64,000 nt of DNA from Auanema rhodensis (GCA_964057225.1 CAXKVF010000078.1:1-64000); one strand, 5' to 3'. Shown: positions 44,901 to 55,500, numbered from the stretch's first letter. Program-made: numbers and translations. The notes: generated from the letters alone by a model not told the origin.

Positions 44901-47560
44901 ATACCAAGTGCACATCACGTGTACATTTAATTAGCATAAATTAAAGTTCACGTAAATTTCAAAGCCATGGTTACCATGAACCAATATCAATAAAAATTTG
45001 TTTTTAGACTAATATGGACATGGGGAATCTAATTTTGAAAACCGCATCTCTTTATCTTTCACGTGAAGCGAGTTACATACCAAGTGCACATCACGTGTAC
45101 ATTTAATTAGCATAAATTAAAGTTCACGTAAATTTCAAAGTCATGGTTACCATGAACCAATATCAATAAAAATTTGTTTTTAGACTAATATGGACATGGG
45201 GAATCTAATTTTGAAAACCGCATCTCTTTATCTTTCACGTGAAGCGAGTTACATACCAAGTGCACATCACGTGTACATTTAATTAGCATAAATTAAAGTT
45301 CACGTAAATTTCAAAGTCATGGTTACCATGAACCAATATCAATAAAAATTTGTTTTTAGACTAATATGGACATGGGGAATCTAATTTTGAAAACCGCATC
45401 TCTTTATCTTTCACGTGAAGCGAGTTACATACCAAGTGCACATCACGTGTACATTTAATTAGCATAAATTAAAGTTCACGTAAATTTCAAAGTCATGGTT
45501 ACCATGAACCAATATCAATAAAAATTTGTTTTTAGACTAATATGGACATGGGGAATCTAATTTTGAAAACCGCATCTCTTTATCTTTCACGTGAAGCGAG
45601 TTACATACCAAGTGCACATCACGTGTACATTTAATTAGCATAAATTAAAGTTCACGTAAATTTCAAAGTCATGGTTACCATGAACCAATATCAATAAAAA
45701 TTTGTTTTTAGACTAATATGGACATGGGGAATCTAATTTTGAAAACCGCATCTCTTTATCTTTCACGTGAAGCGAGTTACATACCAAGTGCACATCACGT
45801 GTTCATTTAATTAGCATAAATTAAAGTTCACGTAAATTTCAAAGTCATGGTTACCATGAAGCAATATCAATAAAAATTTGTTTTTAGACTAATATGGACA
45901 TGGGGAATCTAATTTTGAAAACCTCATCTCTTTATCTTTTACGTGAAGCGAGTTACATACCAAGTGCACATCACGTGTACATTTAATTAGCATAAATTAA
46001 AGTTCACGTAAATTTCAAAGTCATGGTTACCATGAACCAATATCAATAAAAATTTGTTTTTAGACTAATATGGACATGGGGAATCTAATTTTGAAAACCG
46101 CATTTCTTTATCTTTCACGTGAAGCGAGTTACATACCAAGTGCACATCACGTGTACATTTAATTAGCATAAATTAAAGTTCACGTAAATTTCAAAGTCAT
46201 GGTTACCATGAACCAATATCAATAAAAATTTGTTTTTAGACTAATATGGACATGGGGAATCTAATTTTGAAAACCGCATCTCTTTATCTCTCACGTGAAG
46301 CGAGTTACATACCAAGTGCACATCACGTGTACATTTAATTAGCATAAATTAAAGTTCATGTAAATTTCAAAGTCATGGTTACCATGAACCAATATCAATA
46401 AAAATTTGTTTTTAGACTAATATGGACATGGGGAATCTAATTTTGAAAACCGCATCTCTTTATCTTTCACGTGAAGCGAGTTACATACCAAGTGCACATC
46501 ACGTGTACATTTAATTAGCATAAATTAAAGTTCACGTAAATTTCAAAGTCATGGTTACCATGAACCAATATCAATAAAAATTTGTTTTTAGACTAATATG
46601 GACATGGGGAATCTAATTTTGAAAACCGCATCTCTTTATCTTTCACGTGAAGCGAGTTACATACCAAGTGCACATCACGTGTACATTTAATTAGCATAAA
46701 TTAAAGTTCACGTAAATTTCAAAGTCATGGTTACCATGAACCAATATCAATAAAAATTTGTTTTTAGACTAATATGGACATGGGGAATCTAATTTTGAAA
46801 ACCGCATCTCTTTATCTTTCACGTGAAGCGAGTTACATACCAAGTGCACATCACGTGTACATTTAATTAGCATAAATTAAAGTTCACGTAAATTTCAAAG
46901 TCATGGTTACCATGAACCAATATCAATAAAAATTTGTTTTTAGACTAATATGGACATGGGGAATCTAATTTTGAAAACCGCATCTCTTTATCTTTCACGT
47001 GAAGCGAGTTACATACCAAGTGCACATCACGTGTACATTTAATTAGCATAAATTAAAGTTCACGTAAATTTCAAAGTCATGGTTACCATGAACCAATATC
47101 AATAAAAATTTGTTTTTAGACTAATATGGACATGGGGAATCTAATTTTGAAAACCGCATTTCTTTATCTTTCACGTGAAGCGAGTTACATACCAAGTGCA
47201 CATCACGTGTACATTTAATTAGCATAAATTAAAGTTCACGTAAATTTCAAAGTCATGGTTACCATGAACCAATATCAATAAAAATTTGTTTTTAGACTAA
47301 TATGGACATGGGGAATCTAATTTTGAAAACCGCATCTCTTTATCTTTCACGTGAAGCGAGTTACATACCAAGTGCACATCACGTGTTCATTTAATTAGCA
47401 TAAATTAAAGTTCACGTAAATTTCAAAGTCATGGTTACCATGAAGCAATATCAATAAAAATTTGTTTTTAGACTAATATGGACATGGGGAATCTAATTTT
47501 GAAAACCGCATCTCTTTATCTTTCACGTGAAGCGAGTTACATACCAAGTGCACATCACGT

Positions 47561-47583
47561 GTTACATACCAAGTGCACATCAC
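47561..47583 (+). repeat. Direct duplication of upstream target sequence at the LINE 5' junction
   Basis: GTTACATACCAAGTGCACATCAC at 47561-47583 repeats 47536-47558 with a 25-bp offset. This was not seen in any other monomer. Confidence 0.95.
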
Positions 47584-47585
47584 CT

Positions 47586-47963
47586 TTCCGCGCCGTGACC
47601 TCATTCCGCGCCGTGACCTCATTCCGCGCCGTGACCTCATTCCGCGCCGTGACCTCATTCCGCGCCGTGACCTCATTCCGCGCCGTGACCTCATTCCGCG
47701 CCGTGACCTCATTCCGCGCCGTGACCTCATTCCGCGCCGTGACCTCATTCCGCGCCGTGACCTCATTCCGCGCCGTGACCTCATTCCGCGCCGTGACCTC
47801 ATTCCGCGCCGTGACCTCATTCCGCGCCGTGACCTCATTCCGCGCCGTGACCTCATTCCGCGCCGTGACCTCATTCCGCGCCGTGACCTCATTCCGCGCC
47901 GTGACCTCATTCCGCGCCGTGACCTCATTCCGCGCCGTGACCTCATTCCGCGCCGTGACCTCA
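47586..47963 (+). repeat. Minisatellite: 21 perfect copies of TTCCGCGCCGTGACCTCA (18 bp) at the 5' end of the LINE
   Basis: The first unit is 47586-47603 and the last is 47946-47963. Each unit is 12/18 GC with 3 CpG. It is unrelated to the 176-bp satellite. Confidence 0.98.
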
Positions 47964-47990
47964 TTTCGTCGGACTGGTTCTTAAAGGTAC

Positions 47991-48188
47991 GCTTTCTTAG
48001 TTCTTTCATTTTTTTTTCTTGTTCTTTTTCTTTTATCTCTTCTATTTTATTACTCTCTCTCTTTTCCAATTCTCTCTGTCCTTTCTGTCTTTTACTTTGT
48101 TATTTATTGTCTTTCACTTCTTTATACCACTGTCTTTACATTCTTTTTTCTTATTTTTCTGTTTCTTAATCTTATCTTTTTTCTCAAT
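47991..48188 (+). other. Pyrimidine-rich (T/C) 5' leader upstream of ORF1
   Basis: About 190 nt of mostly T/C with very few G. There is no AG dinucleotide and no ATG from 48001 to the ORF1 start. Confidence 0.8.
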
Positions 48189-49229
48189 ATGACAGCTGTT
48201 ACAAAAGATTTCTTTACTGATGCTCTCGAGTCTCTTTCCAAATCTTTCCGAGAATCTTTCTCTCAACTTTCATCTGACATCAAAAACGAACTCAACAGTA
48301 TTAAAATCAATGTAGCAGCTAATGAAGCTCGTATCAAAACTATCGAAACAAACCTCAAATCACGTATCGATACTTTAGAGCAACAACTCCTAAATGTTCC
48401 AACTTTCAATGCCTCTTCTCCTTCTCAAACCACTTCTACCAGTATTATGTGTCATGTTCAAAAAGTTCGATCTGAGGAATCAAGGTATTCTTATCGCTTG
48501 AAAAGAGCGGTTTGGTTTAGGGTTCCTCACGATTCATCTGAGTTTCCCTCGGACCCTACCGCCCTTCTCAAACTTATAGCTGGAAAGTCTAATGATGACA
48601 CCTTGATTTCTTTGATTAACAGCAACCAAATAACCATTACTCGCTCAACTCTCAAATCTAATTCTCCAGGCCCTCTCATTATTTCATGTTCAACAGTTGA
48701 TTTACGTGACAAAATCATTGAAACCATTAGGACAAACAAAGCTAAATGTTTTGAAAGCTTGTCTAAAACGTTTATTCGTCGCGATTATCTTCCCTTCGAG
48801 GTAGATCTTGAAAAAAAACTGCGCGAAGAAGCAAAAGCGAAAAATTTGGATAATAGTGAATCACTTTTCATTGTACGCGATCTCAAACTTATAAAGATTC
48901 CACGTAAACCAACTGCCCGTTCAACCACTTCTACTCCACACGTTTCTCTAAATACTTCTACTGTTTCTAAGTCCAATTCAAATGTCCAATGTCCGTCCAA
49001 TATTGATACTGGTGTTATATCTAGCCCCCCTTTTAAATCTAGTAGGAATAGTCGCTCAACTGGCAGGTCAAAAATTCTTTCTCTGGAGAAAAAATCTTCT
49101 ATTAGCCCAAGAAGAAGAAAGAATCCACCACGCTCTGTTAAGCCTACTGCCGAACTTCCTACTAGATCAAGAAGCGGATCCGATACAACATCTTTATCTC
49201 GGTCCTGTAACAACATGTCCTTTCGTTAA
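48189..49229 (+). CDS. LINE ORF1 protein (putative RNA-binding chaperone, 346 aa)
   Basis: It lies directly upstream of ORF2. The N-terminus has a heptad, coiled-coil-like segment (LSSDIKNELNSIK...IDTLEQQL). A central block FIRRDYLPFEVDLEKKLREEA...FIVRDLKL resembles CR1-type ORF1 proteins by recollection. The tail is basic, Ser/Arg-rich and low-complexity, with an NLS-like PRRRK. No CCHC or PHD motif is seen. Confidence 0.85.
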   Translation: MTAVTKDFFTDALESLSKSFRESFSQLSSDIKNELNSIKINVAANEARIKTIETNLKSRIDTLEQQLLNVPTFNASSPSQTTSTSIMCHVQKVRSEESRYSYRLKRAVWFRVPHDSSEFPSDPTALLKLIAGKSNDDTLISLINSNQITITRSTLKSNSPGPLIISCSTVDLRDKIIETIRTNKAKCFESLSKTFIRRDYLPFEVDLEKKLREEAKAKNLDNSESLFIVRDLKLIKIPRKPTARSTTSTPHVSLNTSTVSKSNSNVQCPSNIDTGVISSPPFKSSRNSRSTGRSKILSLEKKSSISPRRRKNPPRSVKPTAELPTRSRSGSDTTSLSRSCNNMSFR

Positions 49230-52065
49230 AACCGCTTCTTCACCATGCTTGCTTTCTTCTCATGTCCCTGTTAAACTATCAGTCCACTGTTACAATGCAC
49301 GTTCTATTCTCAATAAACTTCATTTCCTCACAATCATTCATTCTATCTCATCCCCTGATATCATCGCCATATCGGAATCTTGGCTGTTTTCTGATTTTTC
49401 TTCTGATCATCTTCCTCTAAATGATCATTACAACATATTCAGAGCAGACAAGCATTCTTCACGCGGCGGTGGTACTCTTTTGTTCTTAAAAAAACAAATT
49501 AACTCAATTTTACTCTCCTCCTCACCCCTCTCTTCATCGGTTCAATATGTTACCATCCTTCTAACCTCTAACAACTCGGTTTTCTCCGTTTGTTATCGTT
49601 CCCCTACTGCTTCTCACTCTGATTTTTGTTCTTATCTTTCTGATCTCAATGGTCATATTTCTAACCGCTCTTTCTTTATTACGGGTGACCTGAACTTTCC
49701 TAATATCAATTGGGATCTTCTTCAGTCCTCACTCTCATCTCCTTCTAGTAAATCAATTATTCAATTTCTCCAAAGTAGTCACTCTGATCAACTTGTCAAT
49801 TTTCCTACACGTGGTAACAACATCTTAGACTACCTTATCACAAACAATCCTTCAATCATATCTAATATATCACGCTCCCCTCCATTGGGTAACTCCGATC
49901 ACTTCTCGGTTACATTCTCCATCATCATCAACACCCCTGTATCCCCTCTGGATACCCTTCCTTTCTCTTCCAATACATTCTTCAATACCTCCTCACTTTC
50001 CAACTTTTCTCAACTCAATTTCTATCGAGCCGACTTCAATGCCATCAATCGCCATCTTGTCAGCATCGACTTTTCTTTGGTATTATCTGGTCTTTCCCCT
50101 CTTGACTCTTACTCCAAATTCACCAACATCCTACAATCCATAATCTCTGTATTCGTTCCTCACAAACAACCTAGGCGTAGAAAAAAAGTTGACCGCAATA
50201 TTGCGGATCTCTACTGTTACATCAAAAGGCTCAGTTCATCTATTTGCCACCGTGACGAGCTTCTCCGCAAAAAACTAACTATAAAACTAGATAGACTTAT
50301 TAAACAAAAGTCTATTTTGGAAGAAGAACACATTGCTTCAACCAATAACCCCAAACTTTTTTATCGCTTCTGTAGAACTCGTCTCGGTGGTTGCTCTTCA
50401 GATATCCCCACGATTAGACTTGGTGAAGAAATATACTCGACAGACACAGAAAAAGCTTCCATTTTTGCAAGCTCTTTTTCTGTCAAACCAAGTATTTCAT
50501 CGGATTTAATCAACAGCTCCTCTCGCCCTTCCTCTATCATTGATTTTATAGACATTTCTCCCGAAAAAGTCTATAAAGTTCTTTCTCATCTTCCTCTCAG
50601 AGTTTCTACTTCTTCTGATGGCATTCCCTACTACTTTCTTAATCAGTGCGCCTCTACTCTTTGCTACCCACTTGCCTTCATTTTTCACAATTTACTCGTT
50701 TCTTCTTCATGCCCTCCGGACTGGAAGAAAGCTTGGATCCGTCCTGTTTTCAAATCCGGAAATCGCTCTAATCCTTCAAACTATCGCCCTATATCATTAA
50801 CACCAAGTCTTTCCAAAGTTTTTGAGCGACTCATTTCACCCCCGCTCCTCCACTTTGGCATTTCTACTGGATCTATATCTGCTCACCAGCACGCTTTTCT
50901 TCCTAAACGTAATACCATATCAGCAATCATTAACAATCATATTGCCTGGAGATCATGTTTGGATAAAAACATTCCAGTCTATACTGCTTTTATAGACTTC
51001 TCTAAAGCTTTTGATCTAATTGATCACTCGGTTCTTTTCCACAAATTTAAAACCATTGGTATCTGCGGTTCTCTTCAAACTTTTCTCAAAAACTTCATCA
51101 CTGGCAGATCTTACTCAGTTCTTGTCAATGGTTCTCTTTCTACTTCTGTAAACTTATCTTGTGGTGTCCCACAAGGCACTGTTCTCGGTCCTCTTCTATT
51201 CCTTTTCTACATTAATGACATTACGTCTTCTCTCCCTGAAGACGTTCATCCTACACTTTTTGCCGATGATCTCAAACTATACAGTACTAATCCGGTAAGT
51301 CTACAGATTGCCTTAAACACAATCAACGCCTGGTGCAAAAATAATGGAATGATGGTCAACACCACCAAATCCAAAATTATGATTGTGTGCAATAATAGCT
51401 CAACCCTCAACCCCACCGAGCCATTTACCTTTGGTGAGTTTCCTTTAGACTTTGTACCTCATTATAAAGACCTTGGAGTCTTAACTGATAACAATCTAAC
51501 ATTTGATTGTCACATAAACGCCATCTCTTGCGCCGCAGCTCTGAAATGTCGCATCCTTCTACGTTGCTTCTACTCTAGATCACCTTCATTTATGTTCAAC
51601 CTTTTTTGCAGCTACGTTCGACCAATCCTTGAATATGCATCCGTGATATGGTCTCCCCAAGTATCTAAAAAAATATCTCGTATTGAGATGGTTCAAAAAA
51701 AATTCTTGCGAGCAGTCTTCTCAAGAGCAGGAATTTTTTCCGACTACAAAAGTCAGCTCACTTTTTTGAATGCTCAAGAACTATCAACCAGGAGACAGGT
51801 AACTGATCTAGGTTTCTATTTCTCTCAAATTAAAGACGTATCAACGGACAGTATTTTAAGAATTTTTCAAATTAAACATTTCACCCACTCTCTTCGCAGA
51901 CACCAATGGAATATCGACTATCCCGAGCTTCGGAAAAAGGCGACAAGAAATGGTATTGAGTACAGAAGCATCAAAACATGGAACGATCTACCTGAAAACC
52001 TTATCAACCTTACTAATGTTCATAATTTTAAAAAACACCTACTCTCTGCTCCAATTGATTTGTAA
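48982..52065 (+). CDS. LINE ORF2: apurinic-type endonuclease plus reverse transcriptase (1027 aa; true start uncertain)
   Basis: Endonuclease motifs are YNARS (49291), SESW, RGGG, YRSP, GDLN (49684), LDY and SDH (49894). RT motifs are NYRPISLT, QHAF, FIDFSKAFD, GVPQGTVLGPLLFLFYIND and FADD (51259-51270). The downstream YVRPILEYASVIWSP motif is typical of CR1/L2-group ORF2. No stops or frameshifts. No evident RNase H or C-terminal CCHC knuckle. Confidence 0.97.
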   Translation: MSNVRPILILVLYLAPLLNLVGIVAQLAGQKFFLWRKNLLLAQEEERIHHALLSLLPNFLLDQEADPIQHLYLGPVTTCPFVKTASSPCLLSSHVPVKLSVHCYNARSILNKLHFLTIIHSISSPDIIAISESWLFSDFSSDHLPLNDHYNIFRADKHSSRGGGTLLFLKKQINSILLSSSPLSSSVQYVTILLTSNNSVFSVCYRSPTASHSDFCSYLSDLNGHISNRSFFITGDLNFPNINWDLLQSSLSSPSSKSIIQFLQSSHSDQLVNFPTRGNNILDYLITNNPSIISNISRSPPLGNSDHFSVTFSIIINTPVSPLDTLPFSSNTFFNTSSLSNFSQLNFYRADFNAINRHLVSIDFSLVLSGLSPLDSYSKFTNILQSIISVFVPHKQPRRRKKVDRNIADLYCYIKRLSSSICHRDELLRKKLTIKLDRLIKQKSILEEEHIASTNNPKLFYRFCRTRLGGCSSDIPTIRLGEEIYSTDTEKASIFASSFSVKPSISSDLINSSSRPSSIIDFIDISPEKVYKVLSHLPLRVSTSSDGIPYYFLNQCASTLCYPLAFIFHNLLVSSSCPPDWKKAWIRPVFKSGNRSNPSNYRPISLTPSLSKVFERLISPPLLHFGISTGSISAHQHAFLPKRNTISAIINNHIAWRSCLDKNIPVYTAFIDFSKAFDLIDHSVLFHKFKTIGICGSLQTFLKNFITGRSYSVLVNGSLSTSVNLSCGVPQGTVLGPLLFLFYINDITSSLPEDVHPTLFADDLKLYSTNPVSLQIALNTINAWCKNNGMMVNTTKSKIMIVCNNSSTLNPTEPFTFGEFPLDFVPHYKDLGVLTDNNLTFDCHINAISCAAALKCRILLRCFYSRSPSFMFNLFCSYVRPILEYASVIWSPQVSKKISRIEMVQKKFLRAVFSRAGIFSDYKSQLTFLNAQELSTRRQVTDLGFYFSQIKDVSTDSILRIFQIKHFTHSLRRHQWNIDYPELRKKATRNGIEYRSIKTWNDLPENLINLTNVHNFKKHLLSAPIDL

Positions 52066-52553
52066 ACCATCCATTGTAATTAATGTTCTCACCTCTCGAA
52101 AAACTATTTTTTTTTCTTTTATCAGGCTCCTTTTTATTTGTAGTTCGTATTTTTTTACACTTCTCTATGACCACATGGCAACAGTCTACCATCTATTTTT
52201 CTTTGTCCCTTCTCAATAATTGTTACTTCGTCACTATTCCTATAGACATTAGTCATACGGATCGGACGCTAGTTACCTCCAAATTGCTAGAACGGGCTTG
52301 CCTCACATCACGAGTACCACCGTACCTAACAACCACATTAGTGAGGTCAGCCATTGTGCTGAACAAACCCCAAGCATACAGCAAGAATTTTATTTGGCAG
52401 ACTGTTCACTATTGATCATAGATAAGCGAGCTCTTATCGAACTTACAATATTAAAAGTCCTTTTTTATGTTCTTATTGAATGGTTCTTGATTTTTTCACT
52501 CCATGACTTAACAGCTACTGTCTTAACCTGTGATATTGAACAATAAACATTAA
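52066..52553 (+). other. LINE 3' UTR (about 490 bp) with terminal AATAAA and no poly(A) tail
   Basis: It runs from the ORF2 stop to the satellite junction. T-rich flanks surround a compositionally balanced core at about 52225-52440. AATAAA is at 52542-52547. Confidence 0.85.
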
Positions 52554-55500
52554 ACGTGTACATTTAATTAGCATAAATTAAAGTTCACGTAAATTTCAAA
52601 GTCATGGTTACCATGAACCAATATCAATAAAAATTTGTTTTTAGACTAATATGGACATGGGGAATCTAATTTTGAAAACCGCATCTCTTTATCTTTCACG
52701 TGAAGCGAGTTACATACCAAGTGCACATCACGTGTTCATTTAATTAGCATAAATTAAAGTTCACGTAAATTTCAAAGTCATGGTTACCATGAAGCAATAT
52801 CAATAAAAATTTGTTTTTAGACTAATATGGACATGGGGAATCTAATTTTGAAAACCGCATTTCTTTATCTTTCACGTGAAGCGAGTTACATACCAAGTGC
52901 ACATCACGTGTACATTTAATTAGCATAAATTAAAGTTCACGTAAATTTCAAAGTCATGGTTACCATGCACCAATATCAATAAAAATTTGTTTTTAGACTA
53001 ATATGGACATGGGGAATCTAATTTTGAAAACCGCATCTCTTTATCTTTCACGTGAAGCGAGTTACATACCAAGTGCACATCACGTGTACATTTAATTAGC
53101 ATAAATTAAAGTTCACGTAAATTTCAAAGTCATGGTTACCATGAAGCAATATCAATAAAAATGTGTTTTTAGACTAATATGGACATGGGGAATCTAATTT
53201 TGAAAACCGCATCTCTTTATCTCTCACGTGAAGCGAGTTACATACCAAGTGCACATCACGTGTACATTTAATTAGCATAAATTAAAGTTCACGTAAATTT
53301 CAAAGTCATGGTTACCATGAACCAATATCAATAAAAATTTGTTTTTAGACTAATATGGACATGGGGAATCTAATTTTGAAAACCGCATCTCTTTATCTTT
53401 CACGTGAAGCGAGTTACATACCAAGTGCACATCACGTGTACATTTAATTAGCATAAATTAAAGTTCACGTAAATTTCAAAGTCATGGTTACCATGAACCA
53501 ATATCAATAAAAATTTGTTTTTAGACTAATATGGACATGGGGAATCTAATTTTGAAAACCGCATCTCTTTATCTTTCACGTGAAGCGAGTTACATACCAA
53601 GTGCACATCACGTGTACATTTAATTAGCATAAATTAAAGTTCACGTAAATTTCAAAGCCATGGTTACCATGAACCAATATCAATAAAAATTTGTTTTTAG
53701 ACTAATATGGACATGGGGAATCTAATTTTGAAAACCGCATCTCTTTATCTTTCACGTGAAGCGAGTTACATACCAAGTGCACATCACGTGTACATTTAAT
53801 TAGCATAAATTAAAGTTCACGTAAATTTCAAAGTCATGGTTACCATGAACCAATATCAATAAAAATTTGTTTTTAGACTAATATGGACATGGGGAATCTA
53901 ATTTTGAAAACCGCATCTCTTTATCTTTCACGTGAAGCGAGTTACATACCAAGTGCACATCACGTGTACATTTAATTAGCATAAATTAAAGTTCACGTAA
54001 ATTTCAAAGTCATGGTTACCATGAACCAATATCAATAAAAATTTGTTTTTAGACTAATATGGACATGGGGAATCTAATTTTGAAAACCGCATCTCTTTAT
54101 CTTTCACGTGAAGCGAGTTACATACCAAGTGCACATCACGTGTACATTTAATTAGCATAAATTAAAGTTCACGTAAATTTCAAAGTCATGGTTACCATGA
54201 AGCAATATCAATAAAAATTTGTTTTTAGACTAATATGGACATGGGGAATCTAATTTTGAAAACCGCATCTCTTTATCTTTCACGTGAAGCGAGTTACATA
54301 CCAAGTGCACATCACGTGTACATTTAATTAGCATAAATTAAAGTTCACGTAAATTTCAAAGTCATGGTTACCATGAACCAATATCAATAAAAATTTGTTT
54401 TTAGACTAATATGGACATGGGGAATCTAATTTTGAAAACCGCATTTCTTTATCTTTCACGTGAAGCGAGTTACATACCAAGTGCACATCACGTGTACATT
54501 TAATTAGCATAAATTAAAGTTCACGTAAATTTCAAAGTCATGGTTACCATGAACCAATATCAATAAAAATTTGTTTTTAGACTAATATGGACATGGGGAA
54601 TCTAATTTTGAAAACCGCATCTCTTTATCTTTCACGTGAAGCGAGTTACATACCAAGTGCACATCACGTGTACATTTAATTAGCATAAATTAAAGTTCAC
54701 GTAAATTTCAAAGTCATGGTTACCATGAACCAATATCAATAAAAATTTGTTTTTAGACTAATATGGACATGGGGAATCTAATTTTGAAAACCGCATCTCT
54801 TTATCTTTCACGTGAAGCGAGTTACATACCAAGTGCACATCACGTGTACATTTAATTAGCATAAATTAAAGTTCACGTAAATTTCAAAGTCATGGTTACC
54901 ATGAACCAATATCAATAAAAATTTGTTTTTAGACTAATATGGACATGGGGAATCTAATTTTGAAAACCGCATCTCTTTATCTTTCACGTGAAGCGAGTTA
55001 CATACCAAGTGCACATCACGTGTACATTTAATTAGCATAAATTAAAGTTCACGTAAATTTCAAAGTCATGGTTACCATGAACCAATATCAATAAAAATTT
55101 GTTTTTAGACTAATATGGACATGGGGAATCTAATTTTGAAAACCGCATCTCTTTATCTTTCACGTGAAGCGAGTTACATACCAAGTGCACATCACGTGTA
55201 CATTTAATTAGCATAAATTAAAGTTCACGTAAATTTCAAAGTCATGGTTACCATGAACCAATATCAATAAAAATTTGTTTTTAGACTAATATGGACATGG
55301 GGAATCTAATTTTGAAAACCGCATCTCTTTATCTTTCACGTGAAGCGAGTTACATACCAAGTGCACATCACGTGTACATTTAATTAGCATAAATTAAAGT
55401 TCACGTAAATTTCAAAGTCATGGTTACCATGAACCAATATCAATAAAAATTTGTTTTTAGACTAATATGGACATGGGGAATCTAATTTTGAAAACCGCAT

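Follow-up and report, generated by a model that had tools for sequence, protein, structure and literature searches.

In the Drosophila melanogaster group, R1 elements display what have been called ‘insertion site rearrangements’, in which the target-site duplication (TSD), sometimes together with filler, is followed by 16–27 nt of upstream 28S sequence having a fixed inner end (Stage and Eickbush 2009, PMC2718515). These were ascribed to RNAs carrying 6–27 nt of upstream 28S sequence in conjunction with top-strand cleavage too far downstream, with independent support from a majority of precise inner junctions (75% of full-length copies) and from tags on off-target insertions (PMC2718515). R2 RNAs often keep 13–36 nt of upstream 28S sequence after ribozyme cleavage, and in some species upstream duplications of about 24 bp are seen, or two repeats split by non-templated bases (Eickbush et al. 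2013, PMC3774820). The initial annotation of the DNA studied here had pointed to R2 and 28S rRNA as a precedent, and this precedent is real, with the upstream duplications of both R1 and R2 being attributed to RNA-borne target (PMC2718515, PMC3774820).

The 5′ junction analyzed here, of a LINE inserted into a 176-bp satellite of the nematode Auanema rhodensis, is a further instance of the junction class known from R1 and R2. Shared with R1 are a site-specific LINE with an APE-type endonuclease, a tandem target, an invariant 3′ junction and flexible top-strand cleavage, as well as a full-length copy in which a TSD is followed by an upstream duplicate, with filler or microhomology in between. 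In contrast to R1, the target here is the satellite and not 28S rDNA, no CCHC motif was found, neither 75% precise inner junctions nor off-target tags were seen, and only one such junction was present in the subfamily of the copy studied. With R2 it has in common upstream-target duplications of similar size and the occurrence of non-templated bases between the repeats when annealing fails, whereas in R2 the endonuclease is restriction-like and the ribozyme HDV-like, and the present LINE is APE-type, gave no ribozyme match and has non-uniform junctions. In LINE-1 5′ transduction, transcription from upstream of the element carries donor flank into a new full-length copy; here the donor would have the same sequence as the target, and the piece would thus show as a tandem target duplication instead of as foreign DNA. 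Polymerase theta type repair inserts short copies of nearby flank at joins having 2–5 nt of microhomology, but such insertions are not specific for retrotransposition and would leave unexplained that the inner boundary coincides with the usual junction position.

A LINE specific for one position of a 176-bp satellite

The window, i.e. the whole 64,000-nt stretch of DNA that was analyzed (GCA_964057225.1, CAXKVF010000078.1:1-64000), is filled homogeneously by the 176-bp satellite (32% G+C, about 330 monomers), with a single interruption at 47563-52553. The interrupting sequence, a non-LTR retrotransposon lying on the + strand, is an intact 5-kb LINE with both ORF1 and ORF2, and the contig is unplaced and satellite-rich (locus C85). 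The features at its junctions and within it are as follows.

47536-47562, + strand: end of the upstream 176-bp satellite monomer (the monomer found about 330 times in the window), including the 5′ TSD copy ACGTGT at 47557-47562
47563-47583, + strand: extra 21-nt copy of upstream target, equal to 47538-47558 and ending at +2 (...CATCAC), found by Tandem Repeats Finder and having a unique join
47584-47585, + strand: filler CT, being C and then an extra T that gives the first unit TTTCCGCG, likewise in three other full-length copies
47586-47965, + strand: 5′ minisatellite of the LINE, with 21 perfect 18-bp units (21.1 copies according to Tandem Repeats Finder)
47966-48188, + strand: remaining 5′ UTR
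48189-49229, + strand: ORF1, 346 aa, with neither a Pfam domain nor a CCHC knuckle
48982-52065, + strand: ORF2, 1027 aa, with apurinic-type endonuclease and reverse transcriptase (FADD motif), overlapping ORF1
52066-52553, + strand: 3′ UTR of 0.5 kb having the tail ...AATAAACATTAA with no poly(A), the element ending in ...CATTAA at 52553
52554-52559, + strand: 3′ TSD copy ACGTGT, where the satellite resumes

In Pfam, ORF2 matched Exo_endo_phos (2.2e-08) and RVT_1 (3.1e-32), making the endonuclease APE-type, and its PDB matches were to the reverse transcriptase portions of LINE-1 ORF2p and of R2. The frame is open at five further places in the genome, one of which is the inverted twin of the copy on C6. 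Elements of the R1 clade are marked by a gag-like ORF1 with CCHC knuckles and by a CCHC motif near the C-terminus of ORF2. Because a regex scan found no CCHC motif in ORF1 or in ORF2 including its C-terminus, with ORF1 also having no Pfam domain, the LINE probably belongs outside the R1 clade; a word search for its clade gave only relatives at ≤30% identity, and Atlas only generic endonuclease-RT clusters. No Rfam family, self-cleaving ribozymes included, gave a match at E ≤ 1 on either strand of 46800-52900, the 5′ end being made up of the 18-bp array. This 18-bp unit heads subfamilies A, B and C alike, with differing copy numbers and variants.

The genome (181 Mb; 180,911,798 bases) was searched using the 5′ and 3′ ends of the element, whereupon the fetched loci were read. 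In subfamilies A, A′, B and C, about 18 independent satellite insertions end in ...TAA followed by ACGTGTACA, all in one orientation, and the 3′ junction TAA/ACGTGT is hence shared across four subfamilies at 70–100% nucleotide identity. The specificity of the LINE for this satellite position, which had earlier been deduced from the duplication, is thereby strongly supported on grounds that are independent of the duplication. Copies of subfamily A are 99–100% identical to the window copy, with four being full-length (C85 in the window, C7:18.09 Mb, C6:21.57 Mb and C4:23.00 Mb) and others truncated; subfamily A′ is 92% identical, and subfamilies B and C show about 70% DNA identity (74% in the RT half of ORF2).

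Variable 5′ truncation, short TSDs and junction microhomology, all typical of target-primed reverse transcription, were present. The truncation points fell at 598, 1130, 2089, 2600, 2744, ~4008 and ~4500 of the 4968-nt element, and the TSDs were mostly 2–6 bp, with others of 18, 19, ~38, 46–54 and 73 bp. Six insertions were off-target (C3:10.70 Mb; C8:9.17, 10.43 and 26.44 Mb; C5:10.94 and 11.26 Mb). Five of these are visibly 5′ truncated, the sixth (L054) having been missed by the 5′-end search, and in three of the six 3′ junctions the tail is followed by AC. A gapped search for the 21-nt tag together with the array gave matches inside the satellite only.

A fifth family (L012–L017, at C81:714751, C5:21973427, C86:77077, C4:13.08 Mb, C101:92001 and C95:168540) also resides in this 176-bp satellite, at a different site and oppositely oriented. 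It shows 64% identity in the RT half, has its own 19-bp 5′ repeat array, and its 5′ junctions cluster after ...GTGAACTTTAATT. For its 3′ junction, two guessed patterns matched variant monomers only, with none at the expected places.

Several further observations were made in the course of the survey. The off-target truncated subfamily B copy at C5:10.94 Mb (L058/L059) lies about 115 bp upstream of a tRNA-like sequence, and its 3′ flank starts with ACGTGTA and continues with satellite-like patches in order; this flank may be a 3′ transduced piece of satellite or a relic monomer used as target. At C4:2668521-2673225 and C3:10704611-10714935, truncated copies have been amplified in tandem along with their flanks, at spacings of 1351/1703 and 3260/3505 bp, such that the LINE fragments now lie within higher-order repeat units. 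The copies L045 (C80) and L048 (C83), which share 99% and 92% identity with the window element, have the same truncation position and junction, which could reflect either a hotspot or a common origin combined with conversion. A further related family at C3:9.42-9.48 Mb (L018–L020, L026 and L027), with a 5′ repeat as in the opposite-strand family, has at least three copies at one and the same point of a repeated sequence that is not satellite and has coding potential, and this pattern fits either another target specificity or segmental duplication. The exact 22-nt SL1 spliced-leader, which is diagnostic of nematodes and marks the genome as that of a nematode, was present in 1,267 copies, most of them within a tandem array of 252-bp units from C3:6741531 onward.

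The duplicated 5′ junction and the junctions of other copies

Tandem Repeats Finder gave 47536-47583 as a perfect tandem duplication (period 25, 1.9 copies, 100% matches). The order of bases proved to be as initially annotated, with satellite up to 47562, the 21-nt satellite copy at 47563-47583, CT, and the minisatellite from 47586, and with ACGTGT flanking the insert on both sides (47557-47562 and 52554-52559). The microhomology TACAT that had been proposed could not be recovered at the outer join, which instead displayed GT or, if CGTGT is compared to CGAGT, identity in four of five bases.

The uniqueness of the join could be read directly from the genome. A 23-nt string spanning it occurred once in the 181 Mb with one mismatch allowed, and a 30-mer spanning the uninterrupted target site occurred 115,119 times genome-wide, so that the satellite should comprise at least 20 Mb, or at least 11% of the genome. 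Since the duplication was unique to the LINE-bearing monomer and present at none of at least 115,000 empty sites, it most probably arose with the insertion. We therefore have high confidence that the junction, as read from the assembly, is a real and insertion-associated 5′ rearrangement of a site-specific LINE.

It might be argued that the 25-bp duplication was already present in one monomer, through slippage or aborted nicking, and that an ordinary +2 insertion then occurred into the second copy, which would reproduce the exact sequence with a common type of junction. That no uninserted site among the at least 115,000 carries such a duplication means that two rare events must have coincided on a single monomer, and we consider this course of events very unlikely. 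An assembly or consensus error, which could be suspected in a highly repetitive, unplaced and satellite-rich contig with a junction known from the assembly alone, appears very improbable, because a clean 25-bp duplication placed exactly at the unique boundary between satellite and element is atypical of long-read error and because a similar design is independently found in L015/L016 on two contigs. A satellite variant pre-dating the insertion was rejected on the basis of the unique join compared with 115,119 intact sites, and so was simple slippage of a +2 junction, which cannot yield the GT GT at 47559-47562, two extra bases (GT) separating the copies.

L015/L016 is one insertion of the opposite-strand family, represented on two contigs that are 98.9% identical. 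Its junction consists of satellite up to the usual point, a 12-nt filler, an 18-nt target copy (−26 to −9), and then the element, with the filler partly re-copying the same target stretch. This arrangement is a second instance of the design found in the window. Long upstream duplications were thus present in 2 of 12 full-length copies and in none of about 10 truncated ones, a difference that is not significant.

The 5′ junctions of the other copies were positioned relative to the 3′ junction, with 0 being immediately before ACGTGT. Full-length copies joined the satellite at +2 (C3:21.27 Mb, L065), +3 (C4:23.00 Mb), +5 (C7:18.09 Mb, having an extra CAC before the terminal unit; C4:13.0 Mb; and C7:0.36 Mb, having an extra CA), +6 (the window copy) and +73 (C4:2.78 Mb), and the full-length copy on C6 adjoins an inverted copy. 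Among truncated copies, L038/39, L055, L068 and L069 were at +2 or compatible with it, L045/L048 and L008 at +3 to +6, C98 at +18, L066 at +19 and L071 at +46 to +54 with a 9-nt microhomology overlap, while L070 (C1:27000-35000), at about +38, is preceded by a 23-nt inverted piece of 5′ array, like the products of twin-priming or snap-back. The commonest single 5′ position was accordingly +2, with none being unambiguously to the left of it, and only one other of the eight full-length copies (L065) was found precisely at +2, unlike the uniform precise junctions of R1. Among the other full-length copies of these subfamilies, the comparison of which had been proposed with the initial annotation, none had a long tag, and at most two to three bases were possibly satellite-derived.

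An odd first unit, TTTCCGCG, replaces TTCCGCG in four full-length copies of three subfamilies, which suggests a defined 5′ end of the RNA. A genome-wide gapped search for a donor having the inner junction CATCAC-C-TTTCCGCG found the window copy only, and a gapped search for satellite followed by array within 45 nt gave six near-target junctions, with the long duplicate in the window copy only. None of the three other full-length A copies can have been the donor, given the junctions, arrays or flanking variants that they show. At the C7 junction, GTGCAC is duplicated 10 nt apart.

The 5′ arrays differ greatly between copies that elsewhere are 98.7–99.9% identical, having 21 perfect units in the window copy and 5, ~12 and ~25 units in L028, L029 and L030, respectively, and the variant units are always on the outer side, as if rewritten outward with each insertion. 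L029 (C6:21565000-21573500) and L034/L035 represent a full-length copy lying head to head with an inverted 5′-truncated copy, with identical 3′ flanks; this palindromic duplication near a contig end is either real or an assembly artefact. Doubled tails were seen in L029/L034 (...TTAA-ACGTGT-AAACATTAA-ACGTGT), L066 (...AATAA-ACGT-ATAA-ACGTGT) and L070 (...TTAA-ACATTAA-ACGTGT), and could have come either from successive insertions into a TSD-regenerated site or from template switching on satellite read-through RNAs.

Origin of the 21-nt satellite copy

We consider that the 21-nt copy most likely arrived on the RNA template, as a 5′ transduction whose donor occupied this very position of the monomer, and assign this reading a probability of roughly 45%. 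The RNA origin, the donor and the priming step that we infer would combine as follows. The donor would have had the commonest 5′ junction, with satellite ending in ...CATCAC at +2, and its transcription would have started about 21–26 nt upstream of its own boundary, yielding an RNA with a satellite tag that is now 21 nt and probably was 23–26 nt originally. At the new site, the bottom strand would have been nicked at the usual place and the top strand cut 4 nt further downstream, at +6, leaving its 3′ end unable to pair with the tag. The top strand could then have primed second-strand synthesis on the terminal GT of the cDNA (CGTGT versus CGAGT), such that both copies remained.

Several observations argue for this RNA-borne origin. 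The architecture matches that of R1, with a TSD, then an upstream duplicate with a fixed inner end, in a full-length copy, and it likewise matches R2 junctions having 24-bp upstream duplications. The inner boundary ...CATCAC lies at the modal +2 position, which this origin, with its exact precedent, would explain; the position is seen in or allowed by L065, L038/39, L055, L068 and L069, so that a donor joined there would be nothing out of the ordinary. One unusual step is sufficient, namely priming at 2–5 nt of microhomology; the duplication is tied to the insertion, has its parallel in L015/L016, and both long duplications are on full-length copies. The extra CAC of the C7 copy equals the last three bases of the putative tag, and the doubled 3′ tails enclosing ACGT or ACGTGT (the C6 copies and L066) would fit RNAs that extend into the adjoining satellite.

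Other observations speak against it. The inner junction was found in no other assembled copy, and the three other full-length A copies differ. If RNAs regularly bore a tag, the junctions ought to be uniform, which they are in R2 and R1, and the heterogeneity of the full-length junctions (+2, +3, +5, +5, +5, +6, +73) therefore counts against RNA-borne tags. The four copies sharing the terminal unit TTTCCGCG point to a defined internal start, no Rfam ribozyme was found, and of the six off-target insertions, the class that supported the case of R1, five have visibly lost their 5′ ends. The tag is also identical to the local monomer and unmarked as foreign. Its 21-mer is the local as well as the majority monomer variant (317 of 332 monomers, 95%), and with 95% of local monomers sharing it, a test for foreign origin is powerless.

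The proposal of the initial annotation that the donor RNA began in the satellite thus stays a plausible candidate, having the R1/R2 architecture and the +2 boundary in its favor and the sister copies without a long tag and the lack of any other copy with the inner junction against it. That the 5′ junctions vary instead of being uniform argues against satellite read-through, which it had also implied, as the normal mode of transcription. Its alternative of template jumping or microhomology repair stays about as likely, with signatures of switching seen in sister copies.

In that alternative the RNA was untagged and the 21 nt were synthesized locally, as a templated insertion of the kind made in microhomology-mediated end joining, which we regard as a serious possibility. 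Two routes can be envisioned. In one, the top strand, ending in ...CGTGT, slips back 25 nt onto the similar CGAGT of its complementary strand, extends to the nick and joins the cDNA; in the other, the RT or a repair polymerase copies 21 nt of upstream target by template switching and then joins. The outer-join microhomology of GT, or of four of five bases, would agree with either, as would the sister signatures, i.e. the 9-nt overlap of L071, the inverted 23-nt piece of L070 and the GTGCAC repeat of the C7 copy, together with the L015 filler, which re-copies a target stretch as in iterative synthesis. The tag being local monomer, the donor not having been found and the 5′ arrays differing among copies that are otherwise 99.8–99.9% identical also favor local synthesis; those array differences and the inverted piece of L070 would mean that the RT or repair step often switches templates. 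Local synthesis nevertheless requires more steps than an RNA-borne tag. Were the top strand cut at +2 and used as the acceptor of a template jump, GTGT (+3 to +6) could not also stay on the left flank, and run-off at the nick predicts the inner end ...CATC. The observed sequence is fitted only if the nick is at CAC/GTG and the AC of the 3′ junction is RNA-templated, or if that AC is due to chance, and a nick at CAC/GTG is not consistently supported, with AC following the tail in three of the six off-target copies. No truncated copy carries such a duplication.

Returning to an RNA-borne tag, an extended version of that reading would have the 18-bp array acting as a tandem internal promoter, of which the outer units start transcription about 20–26 nt upstream, within the satellite. 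As all donors share one position in the satellite, each of these transcripts would come with its own homology arm matching the next target. We consider this idea unlikely. If true, it would amount to a ribozyme-free, protein-plus-RNA homing device for 5′ attachment, in a LINE lineage living on a germline-restricted satellite that this nematode eliminates from its soma, and the tag would show itself only after top-strand cleavage too far downstream, of which the window copy and L015 would be examples.

Satellite-targeting LINEs in the Auanema germline genome

A preprint on Auanema rhodense (2026) describes a 180.9-Mb germline assembly and multi-megabase terminal tandem repeats, of 167–504 bp, that are eliminated from the soma. 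It reports transposon-derived genes in the eliminated DNA, with none of these LINEs among them. The 176-bp satellite is probably such DNA discarded from somatic cells, and no report of a satellite-specific nematode LINE turned up in literature searches.

The general picture of LINE integration is left unchanged by the present findings, the junction type being already known from R1 and R2. What they offer is a testable handle on the transcript start of a satellite-targeting LINE and on how the second half of target-primed reverse transcription is completed. With more than 100,000 target sites of identical sequence and several elements that are young and intact, natural series of junctions such as this one could be gathered in quantity from population or long-read data. 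The setting is unusual in that at least five related LINE families are specialized on a single 176-bp satellite that makes up at least 11% of the germline genome of this nematode.
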